A stretch of DNA of 64,000 nucleotides from Mantamonas sphyraenae STR306 (taxonomy: Eukaryota > Protista > CRuMs). Positions 26,565-64,000 of this stretch are shown piece after piece (the stretch's first letter is position 1; each line of letters starts with the position of its first letter). The notes under the pieces were generated by a model, which saw nothing but the letters and a program-made list of their open reading frames with translations, did no database searches and was not told the origin of the DNA. A program made the translations under genes and the position numbers. The DNA is taken from the NCBI GenBank assembly GCA_026936335.1, contig JAPMXV010000005.1, positions 336,636 to 400,635 on the forward strand, given 5' to 3'.

Positions 26565-26622
26565 GGGTGCGTGATGGGTCGGGGGGCGCAAGCCGCGCCA
26601 AGTGCGTTCCGTGTTGGTGCAG

Positions 26623-30973: not shown

Positions 30974-32711
30974 ATGAAGAAGGCAATGCAGCTGGTTGAC
31001 CGGTCCGTTGATGAGGTTCGAAGCTTGGGAAATGCATCCAGGGTCTGCCGCGTGACTCAGCAAGTGCGTCGTTTGGCACACGACAAACAAAGAGAGTGGC
31101 AAGGCCGTCGACACATGACATCAACAACGACGAGAGTGACAAAAGTGCGTGGCGTGTGTGTGTGTCATGACCCGCCAGTACGGAGCATCAACTGACACCG
31201 GGAATTCGTCGCAGCTGGATCTCAGTCGAGATCTGGACAGGGACCAGCGAGAGAATGTCTGCAAGGCACTGGAACAGGGGGTGGGTGATCATGGGAAATG
31301 GCTGCAGACCCTTGTGCTCGATAGATGCAAGATGGGCGTGCAAGGAGCGGAGTTGCTGGGCGACCTGGTGCCAGCCCTTCCGGCGCTGAAATCGCTTTCA
31401 GCGACGTACAACATGCTTGGAGACGAGGGTGCCGCGTCTGTTGGTACAGCCTTTGGGAAACACCAATGTCTGCGCTCGTTGCTCCTCGGACACAACGACA
31501 TCCGGGCCCGCGGAGCAGAAGCGCTGGCTCAGGCATTTGCCGACAATGACTTTCTGGAGGAAGTGGACCTGGCCTGCAATTCGATCGGTGATGATGGAGC
31601 AGAGGCAATGGCCTGGATGCTGCGTTCTAACCGCACGCTGCGCACGTTGTTGTTGCAGTCAAACAGCATCACAGAGAAGGGTGCCGCAGACTTTGGGCAA
31701 GCGTTGGCTGCAAACAGAACATTGCGAACCCTCAACCTGTACAACAACAAGATGCGAGACATCGGCGCAGCGGCTTTGGCTGCTGGACTGGAGGGAAACA
31801 CTTCGTTGAGGTACCTGGACGCTGGATTCTGCGAAATCGGCGACGACGGGGTCGAGGCACTTGCGCGCGCTCTCAAAACCAACAGCACACTGGAGGCGCT
31901 GAAACTGAACGGCAACGAAATCAATTCCAATGGCGGGGATGCGCTTGGCATGGCACTGGCTGTGAACAAAGGGTTGTGGTCGCTTTCTCTGTGGGAAAAC
32001 GTGTTGGGTCCATCTGGAAGCAGGGCACTGTGCAGGGGGTTGGCAAGCAACACCACACTGCGTTTCCTCGATATTGCCAGCGTTGATATGGGCTCAACTG
32101 GGTTCAGTGCGCTGTCCAAAGCTTTGGAGGAGAATCACACGCTTCAGGGGATCGAAATGGGCGGCGACAACGGGGATGTGGATGTGCTGCACTTGTTGCA
32201 AGCACTGGAAAACGGCAACAGGGCGCTCTGCAAATGTGGTGGGGTGTACCTGGCAGGACATGACGTGATGCTTCAGCGCAACGCCGCGGCTGCAGCTGCC
32301 TTGACTCAAGCTTGTGCTGAAGGAGACTCGACCAACATGGTCAAGTGGCTAGACCGAGGCGTACCAGTGGATGCAGTTGTGGAAACCAACATGGCACCTC
32401 GCGGGCGTACGGGTCTGGAGATGGCTTTGGTGGCTGAGCAGGACGAGGCGATTGCACTTTTGCGCGAGCGTGGCGCGCGCGTGCGGCTGCAAACGATGGA
32501 ACTGGCCATGGCAAAACCCTGGCGCACCGAATGGCACTGGATGTGGGCCCCGGAGGTGGATGGGGCGATGGAGGCTGCATTGATGATGAACTGGGAGGAA
32601 AGAGAGGCGATGTTTGAGGCGGGCGGGATGGAGGCGTACGAAGCGAGTGCGCTGTGGTGGACGCTGCCAGATGAGGTGATGGAGAGGGTGCTTGGATGGA
32701 TTGTTTGTTGA
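30974..32711 (+). CDS. RNI/NLRC3-like LRR + ankyrin + conserved tail protein, paralogue 3, 2 exons (30974-31144, 31215-32711)
   Basis: Regular 28-aa NxTLxxLxLxxNxIGDxGAxALA repeats; intron 31145-31214 (GTGCGT...CTGAC...CAG) in frame; same tail. Confidence 0.85.
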
Positions 32712-41700: not shown

Positions 41701-44700
41701 GTCGGACTTTGTGATGCGCGTGAGTAGAGGAACCCATGTGCCGTTGCCGCTGACGTCGTAGTCGATGTAGTAGTAGGCGGGCTGGTTGGCACAGGGGCGG
41801 AACCAGCTGGTGACAAACTCGTTGACAAAGGCCTGCCTGGGCAGGGCGACAATGACACTGGCGAGGTCGGTCATGTTGCTCGTGAATTGCTGGGCAAACT
41901 TGATGCCGCAAAACTTGCCTTGGTTGGCAACGGTTTTCTCGCAGCAGCGGTCGTTGTCATTGATGCCATAAAGACCGGTGCGAAAGTCGACACCGTCAGA
42001 GCCAGCCGAAGCGTTGATGGATGCGGCTGCGGCGAGGTTGGGGAAGTAGAGCTGGCCCTTTGCTTCTCGCTCGAGCTTGCCGACGGGCAGCTCTGTGGCG
42101 AGGCGGCACAACGGGGAAAAGGGCTCGATGTACTTGAAGAAACCCGCGGCGGCGACGGCAGGGACAAAGTTTTGGCGATTGTTGGCGACAGAGACGACGA
42201 GGTCGCCGACGATGTTCTCTGGAGAGGTGCAGAGGATCTCTGTGGTGGAGACAAACTCGGGGGCGACGGAGTTGATGACGTCGCCAAACTTGCAGGCGAG
42301 GAGGGGGTTGTTGATGAAGCCTGTGCCACGTACGGTGACTGGCGTGCGTCCATACACAGGTCCGTTGTTGGGCTCGAAGGAGGATACCACGAGCTGGGGA
42401 TGGACGAGGAACGGCACGTTTGCGGCACTGGTGTTGACGTAGGCGTTGTTTGTGACGACGAGATCCTTGGAGCCGGTGGAAACGGCGGCGGTCGTGCATA
42501 CGATCTGCGTACCGCTGATGTAGGAGACGGAAGCGCAGTCGACGCCGCCTACGCGAGCCAGCATCTTGGGAGTGTCGACAAAGTTTGTGCCTGTGATGGT
42601 GATGCGTGTGTTGCCTGTCTGTGGGCCGAGGGGCGGGAGGAGGAAGGAGTAGTTGGCCGGCCCAAAGGCTTGGATGACGGACCATTGGCTGGCGCCGACG
42701 ATCTGGCCACCGGTGGTTACGGTGACGTTGACGGTACCTGCGCGAGGGGCGGTGTACTCAAAAGGGTACAGGCCACTGGACGGGGTTTTTGCGACGACGT
42801 TCAGTTCGGAGCCCTCAAAAAAGACGCGGAGGTCAAAGCTGTCGACGGCACCGATGCTGCGTAGGTTACCAAAGGCATCGCGACTCTGGACGTTGACCTC
42901 AGCGGCACTGAGAGCACCCCAGGCTTTTGTGTCGACGGTTGTGGATGGGATGTGGAGGGAAGCCGGGAGACACTGCATGGCAAACGGACTGCCAGAAATG
43001 TGGATGTTTGCACCGGTGGTGTTTGCCTGGTGGACGTGGAGGACGTAGTTGCCACTGACGGTGGCGTTGTAGTCGACTGCATATGCGCCTGGAATGGAGC
43101 CGTGTGGGGCGACGGTTGCGTTGACACGGACGGCCGGGTTTGCCGAGAGGACGGCGTAGGCAGCAAACGAGTCTGTGGTGAGGGAACGGTTGTTGTGGAA
43201 CCTGTCCCTAGCCTGAAGAGTGAATGTGCCTTGGGCCCCAGCGACCACAGAGGAGAGAGCCTGTCCGTACGCGACGCTGTCGGAGACACTTGTGTTTGTG
43301 GGCAGGACCTGTGTAGTGAAGGGGGAGTTGCCAAAGGACATGCCGTTGACGAGCACCTGTACGTTGTAGTGACCGGCTCGGGTCACTGGGTAGGTTGTAC
43401 TGTAGAGGCCTGCGGCAACGTTTGCGACGGCACCGGTGATGGGCGGGATGGCTTGCGTGGCGTGGGTAAGGGTGACCTGGAGGGAGTCGCCGTTTTGGGA
43501 ACGGGTGTTCCCGTATGCGTCGCGGACCTGCATTTGCCAGGTGACAGAGGTGCCCGCAAGAGCAGCAGAGGCGGGCTGTGCGACGGAGCTTGTCTGGCCG
43601 TAGGCGATGTTGTTTGCGACGGAGACGGCGACCGGAGAGCCTTGGACTTGGAGGCCGTCGACGCGGACGGTGGCGGCCCAAAGACCTGCCAAGGTGTAGT
43701 TTGTGCGCACGGTGTAGGTTCCAGAAGCGCCTGGATCGGCTGTGATGGACTGGTCCGCGTGTGTGCCGCCACCTGTGCGCGTGCTAGTCACGGCGAGAGA
43801 ATCGCCGGCCTGTGTGCGTGCGTTGCCAAAGGCGTCGCGTGCCTGGACCTGGTAGACGACGTGCACGCCTGCGGTGGCAGTGGCAGGAGGGTTGACGAGT
43901 GTGCAGCGCGGGCCGTAGGTGGCGGCAGGGACGACGGTGAGGGTTGAGCCGCTGCCGAGGATGGGATCGCCGTTGAAAAAGGCAGAGATGGTGTAGGCTC
44001 CAGCGAGGGTGGCGTTGAAGAGGACGGCGTAGGCGCCGTTGCCCTGGTCGTTCTGCGTGAGACCTGCGGCTTGGACACCGGCGAGGGCGTTGTGGTTGAT
44101 GGAGAGGACAAAGGCGGAGCCGCCGGAGGTGAGGTCGTTGTTGTACTGGTCACGAGCCTGAATGGCGATGGAGCCCTGGGAGCCAGCCACGGTGTTGGTG
44201 ACACCAGAGAGCTGTGTTGTGGCAGCGGCAATGGTGGACGGCAGGACTGTGACTGTAAACGGGCTGGAGACGATGTGCAGGGAGGCGCCGTTTGTGACGA
44301 GGATGTTGTACTGGCCAGAGACGGTTGCCTGGTAGGAGACGGTGCGCTGTCCAGAGGCAACGGGGCCATTTGCGATAGCGATGGCATTTGCGGCACGGCC
44401 AGCGATTGTCTTGTGGGGCACGGCGACGGAGATGGGGTCGAAGGAGGTGCGGTTGTTGTTGTACACATCTTTGCACTGGACGGAGAAAGTGGAGGTTTGG
44501 CCGGCGACGGTTGGTTGGCCGCTGTAGAGGAGGCCACCGAGAGCGACAAAGTTTGTGAGCTGTGCCGGGCCGGGGGAAACGGCGACGGTGCGTGTGAGAC
44601 CGACCTGTGCGTCGAGGCCGATGGCGAGAGTGTAGGAGCCGGTGACGGTGACGGTGTACTGGACTTGGTACTGGCCAGATGCGGCCGAACCCGGGGTGAC

Positions 44701-47700
44701 TGCGGCTGCGATGGGAGCAAGGGCGCCGGACGAGTGGGTGAGGTTTGCAAAGAAGTTGTCGGTCTCGACGGTGCGCGGGTTGTCAAACTGGTCCTTGGCC
44801 TGGATGGTAAAGGAGGCGGGAGTGCCAGCGACGGCTGCGGAGTCACCTCCGCCGGAGCCGTCGAGAATGGTGGTTTGGGAGGCCTTTGCAGGTCCTGCGA
44901 CAATGACAGGGCTGATGGTCTGGCCAAAGGCGTTCCCGTTTACGCTGAGGGCCATACTGTAGGTCCTGGCCTGCTGGGCTGTGTAGGTGAGTGTGTAGCG
45001 GCCGTTTGTGTTTGGAGTGACAGCGACGGCGACTGTGGGAGTGCTGAGGGAAGAGACGACGGTCGCGGTCGAGGTTGCGAGGACGTTGAGAAATTGGTCG
45101 CGCAGGTCAACGATAAAGGTGGCTTGGACGCCTGCAGTGCCTCCTGTTGCGCCGGCGCCAGAGACGACGGTGTTTGCGGCGACGGGGTCTGCCTGTGGGG
45201 CGACGTTGACGGTGAAGGGACTGCCCGGGATGGCGGTGCCTTGGACGGTAACAGCCATGTTGTAGGGGCCGGCCTTTGTGGCGGTGTAGGTCATGCGGTA
45301 GAGACCACCGCCGGACGGATTGGAGGCGGCAGCGTTGATGTCTGCAAGGCCGGTTTTGGTGAGGGTTGCGACGACACTGGAGGAGGTTGTGGTGAGGCGA
45401 TTGTTGTGTGCGTCACGCACGGTGATGTCGATGTAGGCCGGGAAGCCAGCGACAGCGTCTGTGAGACCGGAGCCTGTGGAGAGGCTGTTTGCAGGGACGG
45501 CAGCGCCCGGGGTGACCGAGACGGTGCGCGGGAAGCCCAGGGCGGCCTGGCCACGGATGGTGAGGGAAAATTGGTAGGAGGCGGCGTAGGTGAGGGTGTA
45601 GGCAGCACGATACTCGCCAGCAGCCTCTGTGGTGATGGTGGCGTCGACGGGAGTGATGCCCGCGGTGGTGAGGGATCCAGAGACGGTTTCTGCGTTGTCG
45701 GTGTGCTTGTTTGCGAAGCGATCGCGAGCGGTAAGCACGACGTAGGAAGGGGCGCCTGCGACGACGGCGTCGAGCCCCGGACCGACGGCTGTGCAAAGGG
45801 GACCATGGGCAGGGGCCGGGAGGACGTTGATGGCGCGAGGAGTGCCGAGGGCGGGCTCGCTGAAGCGTGACTTGTCGATGAGTGAGAGTGAATAGGACTT
45901 GGCCTCTGTGGCATTTCCTCCAGAGACCTGGACGGAATGGATGGGAGGCAGGGTAGCCTGTGTGGCGACGAATGCGGTATGGAGGGCCGGGGTCACGGAA
46001 ACGGAGTAGCGGAGGCCGTTTGCACGCTTGGGCGGGTCGACGCCAGCGACAAATGCCCAGGTGGAACCTGTTTTCACGCGGAGGTGCTGCTGGAACGGGG
46101 AGAGGTCGTAGACCATGGCGCCGAGCTGGTTCTCCATGGTGTAGTATGCGTAGAGGCCTGCTTCGTCAGGGGCGACGCCGTAGCGCATGTACTGTTGGAT
46201 GTGAGATTGAGGCTTTGCGCCGTCGAGTAGAAAGACCTGTGTGAGGAGGCCGTCGATGCACTCGTTATTCTGGTAATTGCCCTCCTGGGCGTCCTGGTCG
46301 CAGCCGAGGACGATGGCACCGTTGGCGGTGCGGAGAGTGACGTCCTTGATCTTGCTGCCTCCGGAGGCGTAGAGGGCGTTTGAGACGACTGCGCCGTCCT
46401 TGTAAAAGACGACACGGCCGTCGGAGTTGTCGACGGTGACGGCGATGTGGTTCCAGACGCCGACGTCGATGGTGACGTCTGTGAGGTCGCCGGTCTTGCC
46501 TGCGGGGCCCCACTCGATGCCGCACTTTGTGAGGCCGACCTCAAAGTTGAGTTCGTCGACGTAGACGGAGGTGGAGTAGCCGAGGACGATGGCCTTTGCA
46601 CCGGAGGGGAAGTCGCTTGTGGCTTTGATCCATGCGCCGATGGTGAGTTTGGAGGTGGGTACTTGTGCGCCTCCACCGCGGCTTGCGGTTGTGAGGTCGC
46701 CGTCCTTGCCGTGCATGCGTAGGGAGGCGCCTGTGGTGAGGACGGCGCCTGTGGCAGTGAGGTGGCGTGCTTGGCCGGAGGCATCGCGGACAGGGCTTGT
46801 TGCACAGTCGTCAAAGTTCCAGAGGGCCCAGAGGGAGGGCTCGTCGCCCTGCAGGGGCGCAGCCATGAGTTGGCGTGCGGTGGAGGGGTCAAGACGTGCT
46901 TGCCAGAGGGCGATGTCGTCGAGCCAGCCGTCAAAGACGGCGTTGTTGTCGTAGGCTGGGGCCTGCTGGGAGGTTGAGGTGGACTGGCGTGCGATGTGGA
47001 GGGTGCCTGGAGAGGCGATGGCGTCTGTGGTTGCGAGGAGGCCTGCAGGAGTGAGGGCGACGCCGTCGAGGTAGAGGTAGACGTTTCCGTCTGAGCGGGC
47101 CCAGGTGTAGACGAGGTGGTGCCAGGATTTGAAGGCGTCGCCGAGGGAGAGCGTGTATGCGACGCATGCGTTGTCGCCGAGGCACATGAGGATGGCGTCT
47201 GAGCGGAACTTGCAGACGAGTGCGTGTGCTTGAGAGGAAGAGGAGTAGGAGAGAGCGGACATGTTTGCGGAGGGCCTCTCTCCAGGCTTGATCCAGAAGG
47301 AGACGGAGACGGCATCGGTTGGCATGGGAAAGGCTGTGGCGGAGAGGACGTTGTCTGTGGAGGAGAGGTCGTCCTTGTAAAAATGGCAGTTGAGGGGCGG
47401 GGTGGTGATGTTGTTGAGGAAACGATCGCGAGGCTGGAGGAGGTAGGATGGCCACTGGTCGCCGGCGGTGATGACGGAGGACGGGAGGGAGCCGTTGAAG
47501 AGGCCCGAGGAAGGGCCGTGGGAATGTGACGGGAGGACGGAAAATGTGTACGGGGAGTCGGCGACGTGTACGGCGGCGTTTGTGATGGAGAGAGAGTAAG
47601 CGCCGGCGACGGTTGCGTTGAAGGAGATGTGGTAGCGGCCCGGGGCGGGGTCTGTGACGGTGGGCGGGGAGAGAGAGAGGGAGGGGAGGGAGGCGTGTTG

Positions 47701-50700
47701 GAGGGAGACGACAAAGGGCACGTCGTGGGTGGTGCGGTTGTTTGCGGTGAGGTCACGTGTCTGGATCCACAGCTGAGCGCCACGGCCTGCGTGTGTAAGG
47801 CGCAGGGGATGATCAAAGTAGACGAGGGCCTTTGTGTTGTTGTTGGGGCCGGGGACGACGGTGAGGGTGAAGGTGTTGCCGGAGACAGTGTTGCCGTTGA
47901 GGGAGAGGGTGACGGTGTAGGTTGTGGCGGGCACGGCGGGTGTGTAGTTGCAGTCGTAGGTGCCCGGAGAGGCGTTGTTTGAGGTGGAGCCTGTGATGGA
48001 GCCTGTGAAGGAGCAGGCCGGGGTCAGGGAGTGTCCGTCGAGGATGTTGTTGTACTGGTCGCGTGCAACGATCTGGAAGGAAGCGGGCTGGCCGTTTGTG
48101 ACGGTGGTACTGCCTGTGTAGGTGCTTGCGGCTGCGTTGAGGGGAGCAGGATTAACCTGGAAGCTGTTTACGGGGCTGCCCGGGAGACTTTGGGCAGACT
48201 GGATGTGTGTGACGGCGAGGGTGAAGGAACCCTTTGTCTGGAGGGCCGAGGTTTGGATGGAGTAGTTGCCTGAGGCGAAGGGGGTGTTCTGGGCCTGGGT
48301 GCCGCCTGTGCCAGTCCAAGTTGCACGGAAAGCGTCTGCGCCGAGGTCGGTGATGAGGTTGTTGTACTGGTCGACGGCGGTGATCTGGATGGTAACGGAG
48401 TCGCCTGCACTGATGGTGGTAGCGCTTGTGGTGAAGGAGCAGCTTGGGACATGGATGGCAGCCGGGTTGACGGTGACGGCGCTGGTGGCGACGAGCTGGC
48501 CGGCGATGGAGATGGTTGCGTTGTAAGTTTCTGCCGAGGTGGGTGTGTAGGAGCCTTGGTAGACGCCGTTGCCCTGGGAGGTTGCGGTCATGAGGAGATC
48601 TGCGGGTGCGCCGTCGTTGGGAGAAAGGCGGACCTGAAAGACGTCGGAGGTGATTGTGGCGCGGGTGTTTCCGTAGGCATCCTTGGAGACGATGTCGAAG
48701 GAGCGTGTCTGGCCCGCAGTGATGGGTTGGTTGTAGGTTGAGGCTACGGTGCACTGTGCGGGGCTGACGGGGCCGACGGAGATGGTAAAGGCCTTGACGT
48801 TGTTCTGGATGGCGGAGTAGGAGGTGCCGTCAAAGAACTCGATGGTGACCTGGAAGGTGCCTGGGGTTGTGGTTGCGCGTGTGCAGCGGTAGGTGTTTGT
48901 GGCGCCGACCTGCTGTGCGTCTGTGGTGCCGGTGAGGCCGTTTGCCCAGGAGCAGCGGAACTTGCGGTTTGCGCAGGAGAGGGTGTGCGGGTTGCCATGA
49001 AGGAGGGCGGTGATGTCGACGGTATATGCGTCTGTGGTGATTGTGTTTGGGGCGGTTGCGGTGGAGGAGGTCATGTCCTCGCCAAAGGTGATTGAGGGCC
49101 CGGTCTGCTGAGACCAGCTTACGCCGCCGTCGATGGAGTAACAGAGCTTGTGGACACCGACGGCAGTGACGGAGGAGGCGAGAGTAGGGGAGGCTGAGGC
49201 GGAAAGAGAGGTGTGGCCTGTGCGAGATGTGGAGGCGCACTGACCGTCGGGGGCAAAGGCGACCATCTTTGTGGCGCCTGTGGATGCGCCGGTGAGGGTG
49301 AGCTGAGGGGTGTTGCAAGCGATGTATACGGGAGCAACGGCAGAGATGGCGTTTGTGGGAGCACGTGTGGCGACGAGGTAGGGCCTGTCTGTGGCGGAGG
49401 TTGTTATCTGGACCCAGCCTGCGGCGTTGCTTGTGTGGAGGCCGTCGGTAGTGTAGGAGGAAGAGCCCGAGTTGACGAGGGTGTACTGGCCGCTGGAAGG
49501 GACGGTGTCGCTCTGGAAGTCAAAGAGGTAGGCGAGGTCCGGGTGTGCGGGCTGCGTCCAGACATCCATAGCGGCAGCGATTTCCTGCTGGGAGCGTGCG
49601 CGTGTCCAGTAGCGGATCTGGTTGAGATAGGTCTTCTTGGGGCCATAGACGTCTGCAGAGGCGCCGTTGTAGCCGAAGCCCATACCGTGGATGGAGGTGG
49701 AAAGGGTGGCACAGCCGAGGGAGCCCGAGGCGACAGTCTGGACACCGTTGATATAGAGCTTTGCTGTGGTGCCGTCATAGGAGCCTGCAATATGGTATGC
49801 CATGTTCTTGGAGAGGAGCTCGGCAGAGACGATGCAGCTGCTGGAGGCGGTGCCGTACTGGAAAAAGACTTGGTGTTGGTTTGCGACGGTGATCTGCTTG
49901 ACGCCGATGGCAAAGGCGCGACTAGAGACAGCGTCTGTGCCGGTCCACAGGTACCAATCCTTGGCGGAGGTGTCGTCGTTCTCCATCATAAAGGTGAGTT
50001 CGATGGTGAAGGCGGCGCTGAGGAATGGCAGGGTGTTTGTGATTTTCTGGACCATGACGACGCCTGCGTTTGCGTTGTAGAATTGTTTCTTGGAGGAAGC
50101 AATGTCTGCGGGGATTGTTTCTGTGGGATTGGAACGGGGGAACGGGGTTAGGGGAGTGGTGGTGGTGGAAGGAGAAGGGGGGGTGACGGGAAGGGAAGGA
50201 TGGACGCACCGAGTCCGCCGCTGACCGGGTAGTCGGCGCTGGCGAGGTTTGCGCTGGTGAAGCCGGTGATGGCGCTTGCACCAGCAAAGCCGTAGTCGCT
50301 GGCAAGGTTGTTGCTTCCGTCGAGAGTGCCGTCTGAGTAAAAGACGTAAAACTTGTTTGTGGAGGCAGCGAGGTTTGTGTTGCGCGGGACGTAGCGGCGG
50401 CGGGCGGCGTACTGGTAGAGGTAGTTGGGAGGGTCGTACCACATCTGGTAAAAGTGGAACGCGGTGTTGCCTTCCCAGGCGTTTGCGCCTGCTCGGAACT
50501 GCGTGTTGATGGTAAACTCGCAGAGGCAGTGCTTGTAATAACCGTTCAAAGGATCACCAAAGATGGCGTTGGTGCACGCGACGTTGTTGCCGCTGGGGTT
50601 GGCTTGTGTTGAAAAGCCGGTTTCCTTGAGCTGGGCAAAGGTTGTTAAGTCGCCACTGCCAGGTTTGCCGTTTGCGTAGCGGCGGCCGTAATAGATGGTG

Positions 50701-52064: not shown

Positions 52065-52202
52065 GTTGTGGTGCAGTGTGTTTGTGTTGGTGGGGAATGT
52101 GTGGAGCTGCGGTGGGACGGGAGTCGCAAACGCACAGAAGGGAGTGGGTGCGTTGTCCGACAGTTTTGGAAGAGGAGGCATGGGAAACAAGGGGATGGGT
52201 GT

Positions 52203-55200
52203 TCATTCGAGGCGTTGGCGTTTGGAGGAGAGGAGGAGGAGGAGGAGGAGGAGGAAGGGTCTTTGCGCTTGGGGAGGGTGAAGGAGGGGATGGGGTGGGC
52301 GTTGACGAGAGCGAGAGTGGTGGGGCGTGTGTTGATGTGGGGTGTGATGCGGTCGATGAGGGTGTGGAGGAGGGTGTGCAGTGTGGCGTCGCTGGGTTTG
52401 GGTTTGTCGAGCCAGATGATCTTGAGGGAGAGGGTGGTGACACCGCGGTTGAGGGTGAGCTTGATGGCAGGTCGAACCTGCTTGTAGGTGAGGTGTGGCC
52501 TGAGGAGACGGACAAAGAAGGCCAGGTCGACAGGCGGCACGCCAACGTTGCCCAGCGCCAGGATGATGTGACGCACCAGGGACTGCAGGCTGCCGTTGTT
52601 GATCAGCTCACGCAGTGCATGGTTCTCGTTTGCGTGCTGATGGCGAGGGTGCTTGGCTGCGCGTGCCTTCATGTGTGCCAGCAGCGTCTGGAACTCCCGC
52701 GTCGTGCAGCTGCCACGCTCGTCGTTGGGATTGTGCTTTGCCCAGCCACTGCGCACAGACTCAGGATGCCACTTTCCCACCGTGTTGTTGGTATTCAGGT
52801 GGTGGTCGTAGTCGCATTGTGTCCAGTGTGGGTCGCTGTCGTTGTCAGCAGGGCGTCGTGCTTCCTGCAGGCACAGCTGGGTCTGCTCGTGCTCCTTCCA
52901 GGAGATGGGATGGGGCCTGTCGCCAAGGGTGTCCATCTCTGTCATGATAAGGTGGAGGAGGTCGTAGTTGGGCTCGCCGTGGTCGTGTGGCTCCTCCAGC
53001 CAGCACACCTTCAACCCAGCCTTTGTCACACCCATGGCCAGACCAGCGTTGGGGATGGCATTGATGCACGCCTGATGATCCACATTACGGCCGAGGAGGA
53101 TGAGGCAGAAGGACATGTCGCCCTGGGAGAGTGGAATGTTGCCCAGAGCGAGCTGAATCTGTCGGACGAGCGTTAACAGGGTGCCATGGCAGACCACAAC
53201 ACGCGCCTGCAGTGTCATCAGGTCGGGGATGTTGTCGATGGGATGCTCGTTGGCCAGGGTGTGCATGTGTCTCAGCAGTGCCGTGTGCTCCTTCTTGTTG
53301 CTGTGGCTGCGCTCGCTCTTGCGCCAGGACGTCCAGCCACTGCGCACAACGCCATCTGACAGTCCATCCTCCACGGCCATCTTCTCCTCCTTTGTGGGCT
53401 CGGGCAGAACGAGCTCGGTGATATCGAGGGCATTGACGTCGTCGGTGGTGGTGGGGCGGGTGGTGATGTGGGGTGTGATGCGGTCGATGAGGGTGTGGAG
53501 GAGGGTGTGCAGTGTGGCGTCGCTGGGTTTGGGGTTGTCAAGCCAGGCGATCTTGAGGGAGAGGGTGGTGACACCGCGAGTGAGGGTGTTGCTGATGGCA
53601 CCGTTCACATGCTCGTACGTGAGGTGTGGCCGGAGGAGGCGGATAAAGAAGGCCAGGTCGACAGGCGGCACGCCAACGTTGCCCAGTGCCAGGATGATGT
53701 GTCGCACCAGGGACAGATTGCTGCCGGTGTTGATCAACTCACGCAGTGCCTGGTGCTCGTGTGTGTGCTGATGGCGAGGGTGCTTGGCTGCGCGTGCCTT
53801 CATGTGTGCCAGAAGCGTCTGGAACTCCCGCACCGTGCAGCTGCCACGCTCGTCGGTCGCGTCACCCCGGGACTTGCTCCAGCCACTGCGCTCAGACTCA
53901 GGATGCCACTTTTCCACCTCGGTGGTGGTGAGGTGGTGGTCGTAGTCGCATTGTGTCCAATGTGGGTCGCTGTCGTTATCAGCAGGGTGTCGTGCTTCCT
54001 GCAGCCACAGCTGGGTCTGCTTGTGCTCCTTCCAGGTGATGGGATGGGGCCTGTTGCCGAAAGTGTCCATCTCTGTCATGAGCAGGTGGAGGAGGGCGTA
54101 GTTGGGGTCACCGTGGTCGTGTGGCTCCTCCAGCCAGCACACCTTCAACCCAGTCTTTGTCACACCCGTGGCCAGACCAGCGTCGTGGATGGCATGTCTG
54201 CACGCATTTTGATCCATACAACGGCCGAAAAGGGTGAGGCAGAAGGCCATGTCGCCCTGGGAGAGGGAAATGTTGCCCAGAGCGAGCAGGACCTGTCGCA
54301 CCAGCGTCAACAGGGTGCCATGGCAGACCACAACACGCGCCTGCAGGGTCATGAGGTCGGAGATGTTGTCGATGGGATGCTCGTTGGCCAGGGTGTGCAT
54401 GTGGTTCAGCAGTGCCGTGTGCTCCTTCTTGTTGCTGTGACTGCGCTCGACACTGATTCCCGCTGTCCACCCTTTGCGCACAACACCATCTGGAAACATG
54501 TTCGTCTTGTCCTCGCCTGCAGTTTTCTTCCGTGCGTCGGTGTCTCCGTTCTTTGCGCTCCTTGCCCGTGTGCTAGACGTTCCTGTCTCTGTGCCACTGC
54601 CAGGCGTGACCCTGAGCCTGCGCTGTCCACTGCCTTTCATCTTCTGTGGACCAGTACTGGTGAGGCCTCTGCGTCGTCGTGTGCGGACTTTTCTTGAGCG
54701 CCCCGAATGCCATGCGTCCGTGTCCTCCTGTTCCATGTCGTCTGTGTCGTCGTCGCTGTCGTCTGGCGGCATGTACTCCTCATCCATGGCATCACCAGTG
54801 TCCGAGAAGCTGAGTGCGCCCTGAGTTTCCAACTCGTCGTCCACGTGCTGCTGGCATGCGTTGTTTGCCTCGCCGTTTTCTTCGTACGCCTCCATCCATG
54901 AGCTGGCCACTCTGAGTTGCTGGAGATTGACCTTGGTTCACGGTGGCCAAAGTTCAGGAACATCAGGTCCTCCACGTTGCCGGTGTCTTGTGTGTGTGTG
55001 TCCTGGTCTGCGCCGTCGTCGTCGCTGTCTCCAGTCTGCCGTGTGGCCTGGTGGGAGGAGGACGACGATGTGGTGGTGGATGTGGTCCGTGTGATGCCGA
55101 CAAAGGCAGGGCTGATGCGTTTGGGGACGCGGTTGTGGTTTGTGGTGGGTTGAGCAGGCGGAGGGTGCAACGGAGGCTGAGCGAAGTGCATCTGGGCGGT

Positions 55201-55786
55201 TTGTCGCGGCTGAGGAGGCGGCGGAGGAGGGTAGGCGTAGTATGGGTGGCCCTGATGAGCATATGTGTGGTGCTGCTGGGGATGGGTGTTGACAGGGACC
55301 CAGATGATGGGTGGTTGTGGGTGCTGGTACGGGTTTTGTACGCCAGAGACGGGTAGCATGGTCGGAAACGGCTGGGCAGCCATGGGAGGGACAATGTACG
55401 CGTAGCTGTGGGGTGACGGGGAGGGGCAGGGCGGGGTGGGAACGGTGAGCGGAAGGCGGAATGGACGCCGTCAGAGCAGAAGTGGGGGTGAAGGGAGGCT
55501 GGAACGAGCAAAGAGGGAAACCGGAGGAGATTGGCAGACGGGGAAACTGGCAACGGGGAGGGCAGTGACAGGGAAGAGAGGATCGGAGAAGAGCGGAGAA
55601 GGCAGCAGCGGGGGTGATTGGGAAGTGGAGATGCAGAGGAGGAGTGCAGGGAAGCGACGGAGGCATTGGGGGGCAAGGAACAGGGAGGAGCGGGCAGTCA
55701 GAAAACGGAGTGGAAGGCAGAACGCACGCTGGGTAGGTGTTGGGTGTGGGTTGTTGCTTCGGAGTGCTTGAGTAGTCGTTGTCCAT
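52203..55786 (-). pseudogene. Subtelomeric modular-repeat gene, copy A (two frameshifts)
   Basis: Exon 1 55786-55728, intron 55727-55406. A 4-nt deletion near 54907 relative to copies B and C, and a slip in the GGA run near 52229, break the frame. Assembly error is not excluded. Confidence 0.7.
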
Positions 55787-55879
55787 GGTGGTGGTGGTGG
55801 TATTGGAGTGTATGTGGATTTTGTTGGACAGGTGGAGGGTGATGTGGGTGTTGGTGATACTTTGGTTGAAGGCGGATGG

Positions 55880-56050
55880 GTGGGGTGCACAGGTGGACGA
55901 GGATAAAGAGACGGGGTTGTTGATGAATGGTGAAGAGAGGGAGGCGATGTTGACTGTGGAGGGATGGAGGCGTATGTGGAGGAGAGAGGGTGGGAAGGGT
56001 GGGTGACACTGCCGGATGAGGTGATGGAGAGGGTGGTTGGGCGTATGGGG
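55880..56050 (+). pseudogene. Degenerate fragment of the LRR-ankyrin gene C-terminal tail
   Basis: Translates WGAQVDEDKETGLLMNGEEREAML, then after a frameshift WVTLPDEVMERVVG. Confidence 0.85.
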
Positions 56051-56090
56051 AGGTGAGGGTGAGTGGGAGGGAGTGGGAATGAAGGGTGGT

Positions 56091-59000
56091 TCATTCGAGG
56101 CGTTGCCGTTTCGAGGAGGAGGAGGAGGAGAAGGAGGAAGGGTCTTTGCGCTTGGGAAGGGTGAAGGAGGGGATGGGGTAGGCGTTGACGAGTGCGGAGG
56201 TGGTGGGGCGTGTGGTGATGTGGGGTGTGATGCGGTCGATGAGGGTGTGGAGGAGGGTGTGCAGCGTGGCGTCGCTGGGTTTGGGGTTGTCGAGCCAGGC
56301 GATCTTGAGGGAGAGGGCGGTGACACCGCGGGTAAGGTTGTGGCTGATGGCAGGTCGAATCTGCTTGTAGGTGAGGCGTGGCCTGAGGAGGCGGACAAAG
56401 AAGGCCAGGTCGACAGGCGGCACGCCAACGTTGCCCAGTGCCAGGATGATGTGTCGCAGCAGGGAGTGCAGGCTGCCGTTGTTGATGAGATCACGCAGTG
56501 CCTGGTGCTCGTGAGCGTGCTGATGGCGAGGGTGCTTGGCTGCACGTGTCTTCATGTGTGCCAGCAGCGTCTGGAACTCCCGCGCCGTGCAGCTGCCACG
56601 CTCGTCGCCGTGATTGGCACTGTTCCAGCCATCGCACAGACTCAGGATGCCACTTGTCCACCTTGGTGGTGGTGAGGTGGTGATCATAGTCGCAATGTGT
56701 CCAGTGTGGGTCGCTGTCGTTGTCAGCAGGGCGTCGTGCTTTCTGCAGCGACAGCTGGGTCTGCTCGTACTCCTTCCAGGTGGTGGGATGGGGCCTGTCG
56801 CCAAGGGTGTCCATCTCTGTCATGAACAGGTGGAGGAGGGCGTAGTTGGGGTCGCCGTGGTCGTGTGGCTCCTCCAGCCAGCACACCTTCAACCCAGCCT
56901 TTGTCACACCCATGGCCAGACCAGCGTGGATGATGGCATGGCTGCATGCATGTCGATCCATATCACAGCCGAGGAGGGTGAGGCAGAAGGCCATGTCACC
57001 CTGCGAGAGGGGAATGTTGCCCAGAGCGAGCTGAACCTGTCGGACCAGCGTGCTCAGGGTGCCATGGCAGACCACAACACGCGCCTGCAGGGTCATGAGG
57101 TCGGGGATGTTGTCGATAGGATGCTCGTTGGCCATGGTGTGCATGTGGTTCAGCAGTGCCGTGTGCTCCTTCTTGTTGCTGTGGCTGCGCTCGCTCTTGC
57201 GCCATGTTGTCCAGCCACTGCGCACAACGCCATCTGGCAGTCCATCCTCCTCCGCCATCTTCTCCTCCTCTGTGGGCTCGGGCAGAACAAGCTCTGGGAT
57301 GTCGAGGGTGTTGATTTCATCGGTGGTGGTGGGGCGAGTGGTGATGTGGGGTGTGATGCGGTCGATGAGGGTGTGGAGGAGGGTGTGCAGTGTGGCGTCG
57401 CTGGGTTGAGGTTTGTCGAGCCAGGCGATCTTGAGGGAGAGGGAGGTGACGCCGCGGGTGAGGGTGTTGCTGATGGCAGTTGAGACCTGGTGGTAGTTGA
57501 GGTGTGGACTGAGGAGGCGGACAAAGAAGGCCAGGTCGACAGGCGGCACGCCAACGTTGCCCAGCGCCAGGATGATGTGTCGCAGCAGGGAGTTCAGGCT
57601 GCCGTTGTTGATCAGCTCACGCAGTGCATGGTGCTCGTGTGTGTGCTGATGGCGAGGGTGCTTGGCTGCGCGTGCCTTCATGTGTGCCAGCAGCGTCTGG
57701 AACTCCCGAGGCGTGCAGCTGCCACGCTCGTCGCCGGTCTTGCTCCAGCCACTGCGCACAGACACCGTATGCCACTTGTCCACCTTGGTGGTGGTGAGGT
57801 GGTGGTCGTAGTCGCATTGTGTCCAGTGTGGGTCGCTGTCGTTGTCAGCAGGGCGTCGTGCTTTCTGCAGCCACAGATGGGTCTGCTTGTGCTCCTTCCA
57901 GGTCGTGGGATGGGGCCTGTCGCCAAGGGTGTCCATCTCTGTCATGAGCAGGTGGAGGAGGGCGTAGTTGGGGTCGCCGTGGTCGTGCGGCTCCTCCAGC
58001 CAGCACACCTTCAACCCAGCATTTGTCACACCCATGGCCAGACCAGCGTGGTCAATGGCAAGGCTGCACGCCTGTTGATCCGTGTCACGGCCGAGAAGGG
58101 AGAGGCAGAAGGCCATGTCGCCCTGGGAGAGGGGAATGTTGCCGAGGGCAAGCTGAGCCTGTCGGACCAGCGCCAACAGAGTGCCATGGCAGACCACAAC
58201 ACGCGCCTGCAGGGTCATCAGGACGGGGATGTCGTCGATGGGATGCTCGTTGGCCAGGTTGTGCATGTGCTTCAGCAGTGCCGTGTGCTCCTTCTTGTTG
58301 CTGTGGCTGCGCTCGCTCTTGCGCCAGTTTGACCAGCCATTGCTCACAACACCATCTGGCAACTTGTTCGTCTTGTCCACGCCTGCTTTCTTCCGTGCGC
58401 CGGTGTCTCCGCTGTTGGCCCTCCTTGCTCGTGTGCTTGACGTTCCTGTCTCTGTGCCTCTGCCAGCCGTGACCCTGCCCCTGCGCTGTCCGCTGCCTTT
58501 CGTCTGTTGTGAAACAGCATGTTGACTGCTGTGGACTCTGCGTTGTCGTGTGCGGCCTCTAATTGTGAGTCTCGGCTGCCATTCGCTTTTGTCCTCCTGC
58601 TCCATGTCGTCTGTGTCGTCGTCGCTCTCGTTGTGTGGCATGTACTCCTCATCCATGGCATCACCAGTGTCTGCGAGGCTGAGTGCGCCCTGAGTTTCCA
58701 TCTCGTTGTCCACGTGCTGCTGGGTTGGGTCGTTTGCCTCGCCGTTTTCTTCGTACGCCTCCATCCCTGAGCTGGTCATCCACTCTGAGTTGCTGGACAT
58801 TGACCGTGGTTCACGGTGGCCAAAGTTCAGGAACATCAGGTCCTCCACGTTGCCGGTGTCTTGTGTGTGTGTGTCCTGGTCTGCGCCGTCGTCGTCGCTG
58901 TCTCCAGTCTGCCGTGTGGCCTGGTGGGAGGAGGACGACGATGTGGTGGTGGATGTGGTCCGTGTGATGCCGACAAAGGCAGGGCTGACGCGTTTGGGGA

Positions 59001-59662
59001 CGCCGTTGTGGTTTGTGGTGGGTTGAGCAGGCGGAGGGTGCAACGGAGTCTGAGCGACGTGCATCTGGGCGGTTTGTCGCGGCTGAGGAGGCGGCGGAGG
59101 AGGGTAGGCGTAGTATGGGTGGCCGTGATGAGGATATACGTGCTGCTGCTGGGAATGGGTGTTGACAGGGACCCAGATGATGGGTGGTTGTGGGTGCTGG
59201 TACGGGTTTTGTACGCCAGAGAAGGGCAGCATGTTCGGAAACGGCTGGGCAGCCATGGGAGGGACCATGTACCCATAGCTGTGGGGGAGACGGGGAGGGG
59301 GATGGGCGGGGTGGGAACGGTGAGCGGAAGGGGGGATGGACGCCGTCAAGGCAGAAGCGGGGATGAAGGGAGGCCGGAACGCGCAAAGAGGGAAAACGGA
59401 GGAGATTGGCAGACGGGGAAACTGGCAACGGGGAGGGCAGTGACAGGGGAGAGGGGATCGGAGAAGAGCGGAGAAGGCAGCAGCGGTGGTGATGGGGAAG
59501 TGGAGATGCAGGGAAGGAGGGCAGGGAAGCGACGGAGGCATGGAGGAGGCGAGGAAGCGGGAGAAGCGCGCAGTCAGAAAACGGAGTGGAAGGCAGAACG
59601 CACGTTGGGTAGGTGTTGGGTGTGTGTTGTTGCTTCGGAGTGCTCGAGTAGTCTTTGTCCAT
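56091..59662 (-). pseudogene. Subtelomeric modular-repeat gene, copy B (one frameshift)
   Basis: Exon 1 59662-59604, intron 59603-59279. A 2-nt deletion near 56631 (ccagccatcgcac versus ccagccactgcgcac) splits the ORF. Confidence 0.7.
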
Positions 59663-59757
59663 GGTGGTGGTGGTGGAACTGGAGTGTATGTGGATTGTGT
59701 TGGACTGGTGGAGGGTGTTGTGGCTGTTGGTGATACTTTTGGTTGAAGGCGGATGGG

Positions 59758-59940
59758 TGGGCTCCACAGGTGGATGAGGCGATGGAGGTGGCGTTGGTGA
59801 TGAATGGGGAAGGGAGGGAGGGGATGTTTGGGTGAGATGGGATGGAGGCGTATGTGGTGGAGAGAGGGTGGGGAGGGTGGGTGACACTGCCAAATGAGGT
59901 GATGGAGAGGGTGATTGGGTGGGTGGGGAGGGGAGAGTGA
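59758..59940 (+). pseudogene. Degenerate fragment of the LRR-ankyrin gene C-terminal tail
   Basis: Translates WAPQVDEAMEVALVMNGEGREGMFG*DGMEAY...WVTLPNEVMERVIGW. Confidence 0.88.
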
Positions 59941-59971
59941 GTGGGGAGGGTGTGGGAATGAAAAAGGTGGT

Positions 59972-62900
59972 TCATTCGAGGCGTTGGCGTTTGGAGGAGG
60001 AGGAGGAGGAGGAGGAGGAGGAGAATGTGGAGGAGGAGGGGTCTTTGCGCTTGGGGAGGGTGAAGGAGGGGATGGGGTAGGCGTTGACGAGCGCGGTGGT
60101 GGTGGGGCGGGTGGTGATGTGGGGTGTGATGCGGTCGATGAGGGTGTGGAGGAGGGTGTGCAGTGTGGCGTCGCTGGGTTTGGGGGTGTCGAGCCAGGCG
60201 ATCTTGAGGGAGAGGGAGGTGACCCCGCGGGTGAGGGTGTGGTTGATGGCTCCTTGCACCTGCTTGTAGGTGAGCTGTGGTCTGAGGAGGCGGACAAAGA
60301 AGGCCAGGTCGACAGGCGGCACGCCAACGTTGCCCAACGCCAGGATGATGTGTCGCACCAGGGACATCTTGCTGCCGGTGTTGATCAGCTCACGCAGTGC
60401 CTGGTGCTCGTGTGCATGCTGATGGAGAGGATGCTTGGCTGCCCGTGCCTTCATGTGTGCCATCAGCGTCTGGAACTCCCGCGCCGTGCAGCTGCCACGC
60501 TCGTCGGCCTTGTTGCTCCAGCCACTGCGCACAGACTCAGGATGCCACTTTTCCACCTTGGCTCTGGTGAGGTGGTGGTCGTAGTCGCATTGTGTCCAGT
60601 GTGGGTCGCTGTCGTTGTCAGCAGGGCGTCGTGCTTCCTGCAGCCACAGCTGGGTCTGCTTCTGCTCCTTCCAGGTGGTTGGGTGGGGCCTGTCGCCGAG
60701 AGTGTCCATCTCTGTCATGAGCAGGTGGAGGAGGGCATAGTTGGGGTCGCCATGGTCGTGAGGCTCCTCCAGCCAGCACACCTTCAACTCAGCCTTGGTC
60801 ACACCCATGGCCAGACCAGCGTCTTTGATGCCACTGCCACACGCATTTTGATCCATGTCATGGCCGAGAAGGGTGAGGAAGAAGGCCATGTCGCCCTGGG
60901 AGAGGGGAATGTTGCCCAGAGCGAGCTGTATCTGTCGCACGAGCGTGGCCAGGGTGCCATGGCAAATTACAACACGCGCCTGCAGGGTCATGATGTCCGG
61001 GATGTCGTCGATGGGATGCTCATTGGCCAGGGTGTGCATGTGGTTCAGCAGTACCGTGTGCTCCTTCTTGTTGCTGTGCATGCGCTCGCTCTTGCGCCAC
61101 TGCGTCCAGACACTGCGCACAACGCCATCTGGCAGTCCATCCTCCACGGCCACCGTCTCCTCCTCTGTCGGCTCGGTCAGAACAAGCTCGGGGATGGGGT
61201 AGGCGTTGACGAGTGTATAGGTGGTGGGGCGGGTGGTGATGTGGGGTGTGATGCGGTCGATGAGGGTGTGGAGGAGGGTGTGCAGTGTGGCGTCGCTGGG
61301 TTTGGGGTTGTCGAGCCAGGCGATCTTGAGGGAGAGGGAGGTGACACCGCGGTTGAGTGTGTTCTTGATGGTACCTTGCACCTGCTTGTAGGTGAGGCGT
61401 GGCCTGAGAAGGCGGACAAAGAAGGCCAGGTCGACAGGCGGCACGCCAACGTTGCCCAGCGCCAGGATGATGTGTCGCAGCAGGGACAGCTGGCTACCGT
61501 TGTTGATCAGTTCACGCAGTGCCTGGATCTCGTGTGCGTGCTGATGGCGCGGGTACTTGGCTGCGCGTGCCTTCATGTGTGCCAGCAGCGTCTGGAACTC
61601 CCGCGCCGTGCAGCTGCTCCGCTCGTCGTTGTGCAGGTTTGTGCTCCAGCTATTGCGCACGGACTCAGGGTGCCACTTGTCCACCTTGGTGGTGGTGAGG
61701 TGGTGGTCGTAGTCGCATTGTGTCCAGTGCGGGTCGCTGTCGTTGTCGGCAGGGCGTCGTGCTTCCTGCAGCAACAGCTGGGTCTCCTCGTGCTCCTTCC
61801 AGGTGGTGGGATGGGGCTTGTTGCTGAGAGTGTCCCCCTCTGTCATGAGAAGGTGGAGGAGGGCGTAGTTGGGGTCACCGTGGTCGGGTGGCTCCTCCAG
61901 CCAGCACACCTTCAACCCAGCCTTTGTCACACCCATGGCCAGACCAGCGCTGGTAATGACTTTGCTGCACGAGTATTGATCCATGTCACGTCCGAGAAGG
62001 GTGAGGCAGAAGGCCATGTCTCCCTGGGAGAGGGGAATGTTGCCCAGAGTGAGCTGAATCTGTCGGACCAGCGTCAACAGGGTGCCATGGCAGACCACAA
62101 CACGCGCCTGCAGGGTCATCAGGTCGGGGATGTCGTCGATGGGATGCTCGTTGGCCAGGTTGTGCATGTGCTTCAGCAGTGCCGTGTGCTCCTTCTTGTT
62201 GCTGTGGCTGCGCTCGTCGCCACGCCAGTTCTGCGACCACCCTTTGCGCACAACACCACCTGGCAACTTGTTGTCCTTGTTCGCGCCTGATTTCTTCCGT
62301 GCGCCGGAGTCTCCGTTCTTGGCCCTTCCTGCCCGTGTGCTCGACGTTCCTGTCTCTGTGCCTCTGCCAGCCGTGACTCTGAGCCTGCGCTGTCCGCTGC
62401 CTTCCATCTTCTGTGGACCAGCACGACGGTTGATATGGCCTCTGCGTCGTCGTGTGCGGCCTCTACTTGTGCGTCTCGGTTGCCATTCGTCCGTGTCCTC
62501 CTGCTCCATGTCGTCTGTGTCGTTGTCGCTGTCGTCTTGCGGCATGTACTCCTCATCCATGGCATCACCAGTGTCTGCAATGAAGAGTGGGCCCTGAGTT
62601 TCCAACTCGTCGTCCACGTGCTGCTGGGTTGCGTCGTTTGCCTCGCCGTCTTCTTCGTACGCCTCCATCCCTGAGCTGGTCATCCAGTCTGAGTTGCTGG
62701 AGATTGACCGTGCTTCACGATGGCCGAAGTTCAGGAACATCAGGTCCTCCACGTCGCCGGTGTCATGTGTGTGTGTGTCCTGGTCTGCGTCGTCGGCGTC
62801 GCTGTCTCCAGTCTGTCGTGTGGCCTGGTTGGAGGAGGACGACGATGTGGTGGTGGGTGTGGTCCGTGTGATGCCAACAAAGGCAGGGCCGACGCGTTTG

Positions 62901-63564
62901 GGGACACTGTTGTGGTTTGTGGCGGGATGAGCAGGCGGAGGGTGCAACGGAGGCTGAGCAAAGTGCACCTGGGTGGTTTGTCGCGGCTGAGGAGGCGGCG
63001 GAGGAGAGTAGGCGTAGTATGGGTGGCCCTGATGAGCATATGCGGGGTGCTGCTGGGGGTGGGTGTTGACAGGGACCCAGATGATGGGTGGTTGTGGGTG
63101 CTGGTACGGGTTTTGTACGCCAGAGACGGGTAGCATGGTCGGAAACGGCTGGGCAGCCATGGGAGGGACCATGTACCCGTAGCTGTGGGGGAGACGGGGA
63201 TGGGCACAGTGGGGTGGTAACTGTGAGTGCAAGGCGGTATGGACGCCGTCAGGGCAGAAGCGGTGTGAAGGGAGGCCGAAACGAGCAGAGAGGGAAAACG
63301 GAGGAGATTGGCAGACGGGGAAACTGGCAACGGGGAGGGCAGTGACAGGGGAGAGGGGATCAGAGAAAAGCGGAGAAGGCAGCAACGGTGATGATGGGGA
63401 AGTGGAGATGCAGGGGAGGAGTGCAGGGAAGCGACGGAGGCATGGAGGAGGCAAGGAAGCGAGAGAAGCGGGCAGTCAGAAAACGGAGTGGAAGGCAGAA
63501 CGCACGCTGGGTAGGTGTTGGGTGTGTGTTGTTGCTTCGGAGTGCAGGAATAGTCCTTGGCCAT
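59972..63564 (-). CDS. Subtelomeric modular-repeat gene, copy C (intact, 1089 aa), 2 exons (63564-63506, 63182-59972)
   Basis: Phase-2 intron 63505-63183 (GTGCGT...CAG) at the same position in all three copies; Pro/Gln/His-rich then acidic/basic N-terminus; two ~377-aa modules. Confidence 0.85.
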
Positions 63565-63841
63565 GGTGGTGGTGGTGGTACTGGAGTGTATGCGGATTGT
63601 GTTGGACTGGTGGAGGGAGTTGTGGGTGTTGGTGACACTTTTGGTTGAAGGCGGATGGGAAGTGCTGACGGCGCGGCGTTGCAAGATGACGGCCACTCAC
63701 CAGCGACATTTGCACTCCCACCCAATGCCCACAGCCCCATGTCAGCACCCAACACAGCCACCCCGCCAGATAACATAAGCACAACTCACACGACCTAGAC
63801 CAGACTCATCATTCCAACAACAACACACAATGGCATAAACA

Positions 63842-64000
63842 TTAGGGTTAGGGTTAGGGTTAGGGTTAGGGTTAGGGTTAGGGTTAGGGTTAGGGTTAGG
63901 GTTAGGGTTAGGGTTAGGGTTAGGGTTAGGGTTAGGGTTAGGGTTAGGGTTAGGTTAGGGTTAGGGTTAGGGTTAGGGTTAGGGTTAGGGTTAGGGTTAG
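63842..64000 (+). repeat. Telomeric (TTAGGG)n array, right chromosome end
   Basis: About 26 repeats running to the window end, G-rich strand pointing outward; one TTAGG variant near 63950. Confidence 0.98.

Follow-up and report, generated by a model that had tools for sequence, protein, structure and literature searches.

Few scaffolds are known for modular DNA readers with evolvable specificity, namely C2H2 fingers and TALE-like repeats, and an arms race with mobile DNA has been proposed for the KRAB zinc-finger proteins (KRAB-ZFPs) (PMC4592553). The window analysed here, a stretch of 64,000 nucleotides from Mantamonas sphyraenae STR306 (positions 336,636 to 400,635 of contig JAPMXV010000005.1), forms the right end of contig C5 in a 25,061,354-bp, 78-contig assembly and carries, directly inside the telomere, an array of three genes built from tandem modules with a conserved frame and hypervariable patches. 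The family to which these genes belong most likely (probability about 0.58) serves the host as a repertoire of nuclear nucleic-acid readers. Recombination at the telomeres would have diversified them, selection would have favoured new specificities, and a few members would be reader-cutters. The likeness to the C2H2/KRAB-ZFPs and PRDM9 lies in a large, duplicating family of tandem-module proteins whose frame is conserved and in which one helix face is under positive selection (PMC4592553). The Mantamonas proteins differ from them in having no Cys2His2, KRAB or SET (Cys2His2 fingers and a KRAB domain were absent from the window translations and the Pfam scans), and from the C2H2/KRAB-ZFPs also in a module of about 190 residues modelled as all-helical, in their four putative readers per protein, in their telomeric location and in the nuclease-like domain of some members.

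A second likeness concerns the TALE, RipTAL, Bat and MOrTL proteins, described as near-identical repeats that differ at fixed specificity positions (PMC5472282). The Mantamonas repeat, however, measures about 190/375 residues against 33–35, has three variable patches per domain and no two-residue code, and is encoded by eukaryotic, intron-containing genes without any sequence match to the TALE-like group. An earlier reading of this stretch, made from its sequence only, had proposed a swappable specificity conceptually like that of TALE arrays; the variable helix alleles, nearly all unique (51/52 and 50/52), do not demonstrate a TALE-like code.

The yeast Y' and fungal TLH families also occupy most chromosome ends as one gene family with some truncated or frameshifted copies (PMC1635262). 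The Mantamonas family differs from these in having no helicase (the Pfam scan of the window genes gave no RecQ-like helicase), in its focal diversifying selection and in its about 160 distinct copies. The HeT-A and TART retroelements form head-to-tail arrays at chromosome ends with the 5' end toward the telomere, and the Mantamonas units are likewise placed head to tail with this orientation. A retroelement of this type was rejected, since there is no reverse transcriptase (RT) or gag Pfam match and no poly(A) at the 3' junctions, the intron is retained, and both TERT and TTAGGG are present.

The family is an orphan, without a homolog in any database searched. The exons were joined by a local script for frame, length and charge, and the homology searches were queried with exon 2 or with modules. 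Pfam scans of the window genes and of the contig 69 gene gave no family match to the modules. Searches with the module, the nuclease-like domain and a diverged half-module profile found no relative among 5.8 billion proteins (0.55–1.75x the query length), and neither did a HMMER scan of 1.84 billion representative proteins. No relative of the module or of the nuclease-like domain was present among the PDB sequences, none was found in metagenome and viral contig collections, and no description of the family was found in the literature, the coverage of which was incomplete. The resemblance to forkhead proteins and linker histones suggested earlier fell away, as no sequence link to forkhead or histone H1 appeared in Pfam, in the PDB sequences or among the 1.84 billion proteins.

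Conserved frame and diversifying patches

All six modules announced by the sequence-only reading, two per gene, are present in the minus-strand translations with every patch string it had quoted. They are 88–91% identical to one another, and each consists of two related halves (A and B) that align at 28–34% identity and have in common the motif it had described, together with a further C-terminal helix. The variable sites, 5–12 per half, fall in three places: a loop, one face of the third core helix, and the N-cap at which the first core helix begins. The last of these, on the first helix-turn-helix (HTH)-like helix of each half, comes in addition to the patches listed before. The variable positions of the third core helix follow the pattern i, i+3, i+4, i+7, i+8, identical in A and B. 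Their periodicity (90–95 degrees) and their orientation with respect to the hydrophobic moment (143 and 178 degrees in the two halves) place them on a single helix face opposite the hydrophobic one. The residues found on this face are mostly S, N, Q, H, K, R, D and T, with some L, I, P, V and G, while W and F are absent.

The ratio of nonsynonymous (dN) to synonymous (dS) change was determined in a split-half test with 52 modules, in which the variable sites were defined on a random half and measured on the other half. The held-out variable sites gave a dN of 0.94 and a dS of 0.50 (ratio 1.5–2.35 over 20 splits, mean about 1.9), against a dN of 0.072 and a dS of 0.168 in the scaffold (about 0.43), all by counting that ignores recombination; positive selection thus falls on the variable (candidate specificity) sites of a conserved frame, as in the KRAB-ZFPs. 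These values support a fixed scaffold under purifying selection with focal patches that diversify under selection, and agree with the invariant scaffold, the hypervariable patches and the excess of nonsynonymous change anticipated from the sequence. A diversity-generating retroelement was rejected as the source of the variation, since only 34% of the variable-site variants start from A and there is no RT in the unit.

The model of the full module was poor (pLDDT, the predicted local distance difference test, 42). The half-module, modelled from a mixed A/B alignment, reached a pLDDT of 71 (71–84 in the core) and a predicted TM-score (pTM) of 0.65, and is all helical. Most of its top 50 structural neighbours are winged-helix/HTH domains (Rv0674, NsrR, CRP, ORC, BlaI/MecI, Fur, MarR, PadR and Stn1 among those named), aligned over residues 55–120; this segment includes the variable helix, which occupies the recognition position (helix 3) in the overlays. 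Both halves of the full-module model likewise fall among winged-helix/HTH neighbours. The modelled core overlays those of PaaX-like Rv0674, NsrR, CRP, BlaI/MecI, Fur, ArgR and Stn1-C at root-mean-square deviations of 1.6–3.5 Å over 50–80 residues, whereas the module as a whole differs in its Z of at most 5.7, its extra flanking helices, the missing wing in the models, the lack of sequence similarity and its tandem hypervariable arrays. The earlier proposal of winged-helix helices 1–3 finds partial support in this three-helix core, with the variable helix as the third, and the HTH-like module is a fair lead, weak but consistent, that falls short of a family assignment. The ESM Atlas features of the half-module gave only LRR-like (leucine-rich repeat) hits below 0.9, and an LRR fold was dropped, the models being all-helical without a parallel sheet. 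A cro-type HTH with the constant helix after GVT as recognition helix was also discarded, since its spacing is off by one and the neighbours pair with the preceding three helices.

The array at the end of contig C5 and its spread between chromosome ends

The three genes, of ~3.9 kb each, lie on the minus strand head to tail and read inward from the telomere. The units are 89% identical over 3.7–7.6 kb, and each contains two ~1.1-kb A+B modules. Their features are the following:

63842..64000, plus strand: TTAGGG telomere array, chromosome end
63565..63841, minus strand: telomere-adjacent conserved cap, probable promoter region
63506..63564, minus strand: gene 3 exon 1 (59 nt, ATG at 63564)
63183..63505, minus strand: gene 3 intron (323 nt, GT..AG), spliced in the RNA-like run
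59972..63182, minus strand: gene 3 exon 2, with the N-region, two A+B modules, and the poly-Ser and KRQRLE tail
61241..62254, minus strand: gene 3 module 1 (half A core 61898–62254, half B core 61313–61663)
61940–61981 and 61355–61390, minus strand: variable helices of gene 3 module 1
60119..61123, minus strand: gene 3 module 2 (variable helices 60812–60853 and 60233–60268)
59757..59926, plus strand: spacer between genes 3 and 2, decayed 3' tail fragment of a convergent LRR/ankyrin-family gene
56091..59662, minus strand: gene 2 (ATG 59662; modules 57346–58350 and 56220–57228)
55880..56048, plus strand: spacer between genes 2 and 1, second LRR/ankyrin tail fragment, with the junction as in the first spacer
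52203..55786, minus strand: gene 1 (ATG 55786; modules 53468–54484 and 52337–53350)

The subtelomeric position of the array is confirmed by the telomere repeats directly outside it. The three units are all present, as described from the sequence, but only the distal gene (gene 3) is intact, and it is spliced, encoding 1,089 residues once the exons are joined. In gene 2 the frame is broken by a 2-nt deletion within loop patch 3 (at about 56640). Its copy of 98.6% identity (over 2.7 kb), which is the terminal gene of contig 26 on the left side, does not have this deletion. Two breaks affect gene 1, namely a 4-nt deletion at about 54910 and a 1-nt indel in the part coding for the poly-Ser tail; the homology of this gene stops about 10 bp past the stop codon. 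The frame breaks in these two genes could stem from assembly error.

The gene 3 product starts with Pro/Gln-rich, acidic and basic segments, followed by the halves in the order A-B-A-B, the poly-Ser stretch and the KRQRLE tail. Basic stretches resembling nuclear localization signals (NLS) are present and no transmembrane-like segment was found (maximum KD19 1.86, located inside a module core), both as previously noted. The exon joint 63182–63506 was seen at a depth of 2401 in one public RNA-like run (X4), in which the intron is about 40–100x less covered than the exons. The family is transcribed and spliced, these data speaking for the family and not specifically for this copy of gene 3.

The published FALCON assembly (25.06 Mb, 78 contigs) has TTAGGG at both ends of 59 contigs and at one end of 14, that is, 132 telomere-bearing ends (PMC10492846). 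A 27-mer motif of half B has 326 matches genome-wide against 0 for the reversed control, so the module pattern is far beyond chance. The exon-1/splice-donor motif has 161 matches and a 24-mer motif of the cap 127; among the 100 cap matches listed nearly all lie about 280–500 bp from contig ends, and the terminal copies have uniform polarity among the matches listed. Set against the 132 ends, these counts give about 160 genes with 326 modules and place a member as the first gene inside about 96% of the telomere-bearing ends; the genome-wide figures are motif counts, and about 30 end fragments were read directly. Pieces of the intron, N-region and module were also found at low depth and about 85–98% identity in an independent biofilm metagenome, so the family exists beyond this culture. 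Three further observations concern particular contigs: in C76 (1–200) one family member has telomere repeats attached directly within its exon 1, the mark of a terminal truncation that was healed; in C3 (8289–8639, minus strand) the TERT gene lies about 8 kb from the chromosome end, directly inside two family units; and in C66 (19315–22728, minus strand) another member, located about 20 kb from where the contig starts, has the orientation opposite to that of the terminal copies.

Besides the pair formed by gene 2 and the contig 26 copy, two other chromosome ends have more than 4 kb in common at 99.85% identity. The internal junctions between units bear the same decayed convergent LRR/ankyrin tail; at several ends the innermost unit still abuts an LRR/ankyrin gene, and at others the homology halts 10–60 bp after the stop codon and gives way to unrelated sequence. 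In the 52 modules, 76–83% of the informative site pairs fail the four-gamete test at every distance, a figure to which recurrent mutation contributes, and r2 drops to 0.02–0.03 beyond 10 bp. The same loop alleles turn up in modules that are otherwise unrelated and do not have their helix alleles in common. Ectopic recombination together with short conversion would be the simplest reading of the four-gamete and r2 data.

Inward of the array, the window contains three LRR and ankyrin-like genes (26602–29516 and 31149–32711, plus strand) whose shared C-terminal tail of ~60 residues is rich in Trp and contains an F-box-like LPDEV motif. Fragments of this tail make up the spacers that separate the telomeric units, the first spacer (59757..59926) being homologous to 29237–29397 and 32543–32699. 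Amid these genes, at 29386–30966 (plus strand), RtcB-like RNA ligase motifs were recognised by eye. A gene at 32716–50442 (minus strand), whose exons extend to about 52000, encodes a very large protein of at least 5,900 residues; LamG-like, filamin/Ig-like and IPT-like repeats and a C-terminus that crosses the membrane several times were likewise recognised by eye.

Interstitial relatives with a predicted nuclease domain

In an interstitial cluster of contig 29 the modules run in frame into a C-terminal domain of ~450 residues. Three such nuclease-like fusions, with arrays of 3.5–4 modules, were found: a pair on contig 29, of which one copy has a frameshift close to its end, and a third on contig 69. 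The contig 69 gene is a frame of 2,165 residues with eight diverged halves ahead of the domain, which is 44–45% identical to that of contig 29. The domain shows in order an Asp after the first hydrophobic strand, a Glu after the second, a basic arch-like segment, the motifs EAD and DSD and a final helix-turn Asp, and on this motif reading the seven acidic residues are kept in order in both paralogs. The pattern described for FEN-like PIN domains comprises six acidic core residues (after S1, S2 and S4, two before H4 and one before H5) plus the H2TH/H3TH Asp (PMC5499597), and it is present in full in the contig 29 and contig 69 paralogs, with Glu at S2. The likeness to FEN1, XPG, EXO1, Asteroid, vhs and Pox G5 thus includes the order and spacing of the acidic motifs, the basic arch-like segment and the H2TH/H3TH-like Asp, whereas the Mantamonas domain differs in scoring below all hidden Markov model (HMM) thresholds, in the Glu for Asp after strand 2 and in its position C-terminal to variable arrays. 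Its ESM features lie closest to Asteroid, XPG_I, FAM120A, Pox G5 and vhs (0.88–0.90, top score 0.90), with 9/10 neighbours in the same family or clan and the MKT1 cluster also among them. The motif order and these features point to a predicted FEN1/XPG/Asteroid-like PIN domain in the interstitial relatives. No relative of it was detectable elsewhere in the genome at E<=1.

The domain is conserved between contigs 29 and 69, with a dN of 0.61, a dS of about 2.3 (near saturation) and a dN/dS of about 0.26; for the two contig 29 copies dN and dS are 0.067 and 0.10. The contig 29 modules are 88.8% identical to the telomeric ones, which are 89.3% identical among themselves, so they draw on the same pool, and the diverged contig 69 gene suggests that array-plus-nuclease may be the older architecture. 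Crinkler and RHS effectors carry a header domain followed by a P-loop NTPase and a restriction endonuclease-type toxin; an effector of this kind was rejected, since there is no P-loop NTPase in the window genes or in the contig 69 gene.

The contig 29 cluster (73768–104422), which lies inside the largest contig and contains no TTAGGG, consists of two convergent module arrays around about 9 kb of ordinary-looking genes (oxidase-like, transporter-like) and looks like a former mini-chromosome or fused ends. Ahead of its left array, and in frame with it, lies a cysteine-protease-like fragment (GEHY..W..YND motif), and a frame of 3,224 residues has the order reader-nuclease-reader. A long tandem repeat region (270800–272499) lies directly upstream of the diverged nuclease-fused gene of contig 69.

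Function of the family and alternative explanations

The preferred reading is that of a host-encoded, lineage-specific repertoire of modular readers, the target of which would most likely be double-stranded DNA. The product of each gene would probably be nuclear and contain four HTH-like domains in the order A-B-A-B; their constant helical frame would present the variable third helix, the loop and the helix N-cap, together setting specificity. With the genes housed as the first gene inside nearly every telomere, ectopic recombination would move whole genes between ends and short gene conversion would reshuffle the patches, selection keeping the frame and favouring new patch residues. The few interstitial members with 3.5–4 modules and a FEN1/XPG-like PIN domain would be reader-plus-cutter versions, and the nuclease fusion in three relatives lends independent support to a nucleic-acid target; the many members without a nuclease would work by way of the Pro/Gln-rich and acidic N-region or by recruiting partners. 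The likeliest driver would be a conflict with mobile or viral DNA, which would be the probable targets.

Several observations weigh against the reader repertoire. The dN/dS values come from NG86 counting on related sequences with recombination ignored, and dS is also raised at the variable codons (about 0.5), which means that conversion or local mutation could account for some of the signal. The same raised dS and the frameshifts of the proximal copies would fit a decaying subtelomeric repeat in which the patches are mutational or conversion hotspots without adaptive meaning, an explanation largely refuted, and very improbable, given the scaffold dN/dS of 0.43, the helical-face periodicity repeated in two diverged halves and the mostly open full-length frames, spliced and expressed. 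Concerning the fold, the best Z (5.7) is within the range of common helical arrangements, Foldseek with the half-module gave nothing at E<=0.001, and an Atlas structure search gave nothing clear (TM-scores about 0.4 or less). The wing region was modelled as a helix (pLDDT 57–60) with no wing, although one diverged half has an alternating hydrophobic pattern and a hairpin-like segment there, which leaves a wing possible. Arg is rare on the variable face (3–8%) and the A halves are net acidic. The nuclease-like domain is below every HMM threshold in the Pfam, PDB and protein searches, and its hhalign score against the XPG family of the same genome is weak (23.5 versus a shuffled maximum of 19.1, P 0.027).

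Low Z and acidic A halves, together with the subtelomeric location beside an expanded LRR/ankyrin family and the hydrophobic L, I, P and V on the variable face, would suit diversifying intracellular receptors that recognise proteins of viruses, bacteria or selfish elements, comparable to NLR, LRR or subtelomeric effector repertoires, the HTH likeness then being a common three-helix arrangement. We regard such receptors as unlikely, since each half, taken independently, lands among HTH domains and has the variable helix at the recognition position, the sole effector found fused is nuclease-like, and aromatic residues, typical of protein-binding paratopes, are nearly absent from the variable face. 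RNA might instead be the ligand, with modular readers of PPR/PUF-like logic and a vhs- or PRORP-like PIN RNase directed against viral or transposon transcripts. The all-helical repeat and the vhs and MKT1 clusters among the ESM neighbours agree with this, as do the inclusion of the RNase vhs among FEN-like PIN domains and the specificity that the PRORP and ZC3H12A PIN RNases gain from added RNA-binding domains (PMC5499597), but a repeat of about 190 residues with an HTH-like core is unlike a 35-residue helical hairpin and the proteins carry NLS-like motifs, which makes this option improbable. Somewhat less improbable, but still quite unlikely, is a selfish chromosome-end element whose nuclease members cut at module-chosen sites, the broken ends being healed by a copied cap-plus-gene cassette; it would also explain the many small chromosomes. 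The cap at 127 ends for 132 telomere-bearing ends (PMC10492846), the fixed polarity, the inner boundary often 10–60 bp after the stop codon with unrelated neighbours, and the convergent arrays inside the largest contig, which resemble former ends, all speak for it. A passive cassette, however, would have no need of the purified scaffold and diversifying patches kept by about 160 nuclease-less copies; the two neighbours followed to their ends (L008, L010) seem to terminate at stop codons of their own, there are only three nuclease copies (one frameshifted), and no transposase, RT or terminal repeats were seen in the unit.

The reader repertoire would probably represent modular recognition of a known kind on a scaffold that is new. 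A stronger version, which we put forward tentatively and hold to be possible rather than probable, is that of a natural eukaryotic platform for re-targetable DNA recognition on a new scaffold, in which tandem HTH-like domains set specificity with helix 3 and the loop, a telomere-housed library holds more than 300 variants, and some members with a FEN1-like nuclease would be the counterpart of zinc-finger and TALE nucleases (ZFN/TALEN) in genome defence. If true, a deep-branching eukaryote would have an independent reader scaffold, with more than 300 natural variants on a fixed frame as a data set for its recognition code, and the family would offer a possible new engineering scaffold and a view of genome defence in a free-living protist. 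A single family capping about 96% of the telomere-bearing ends is in itself unusual chromosome biology.

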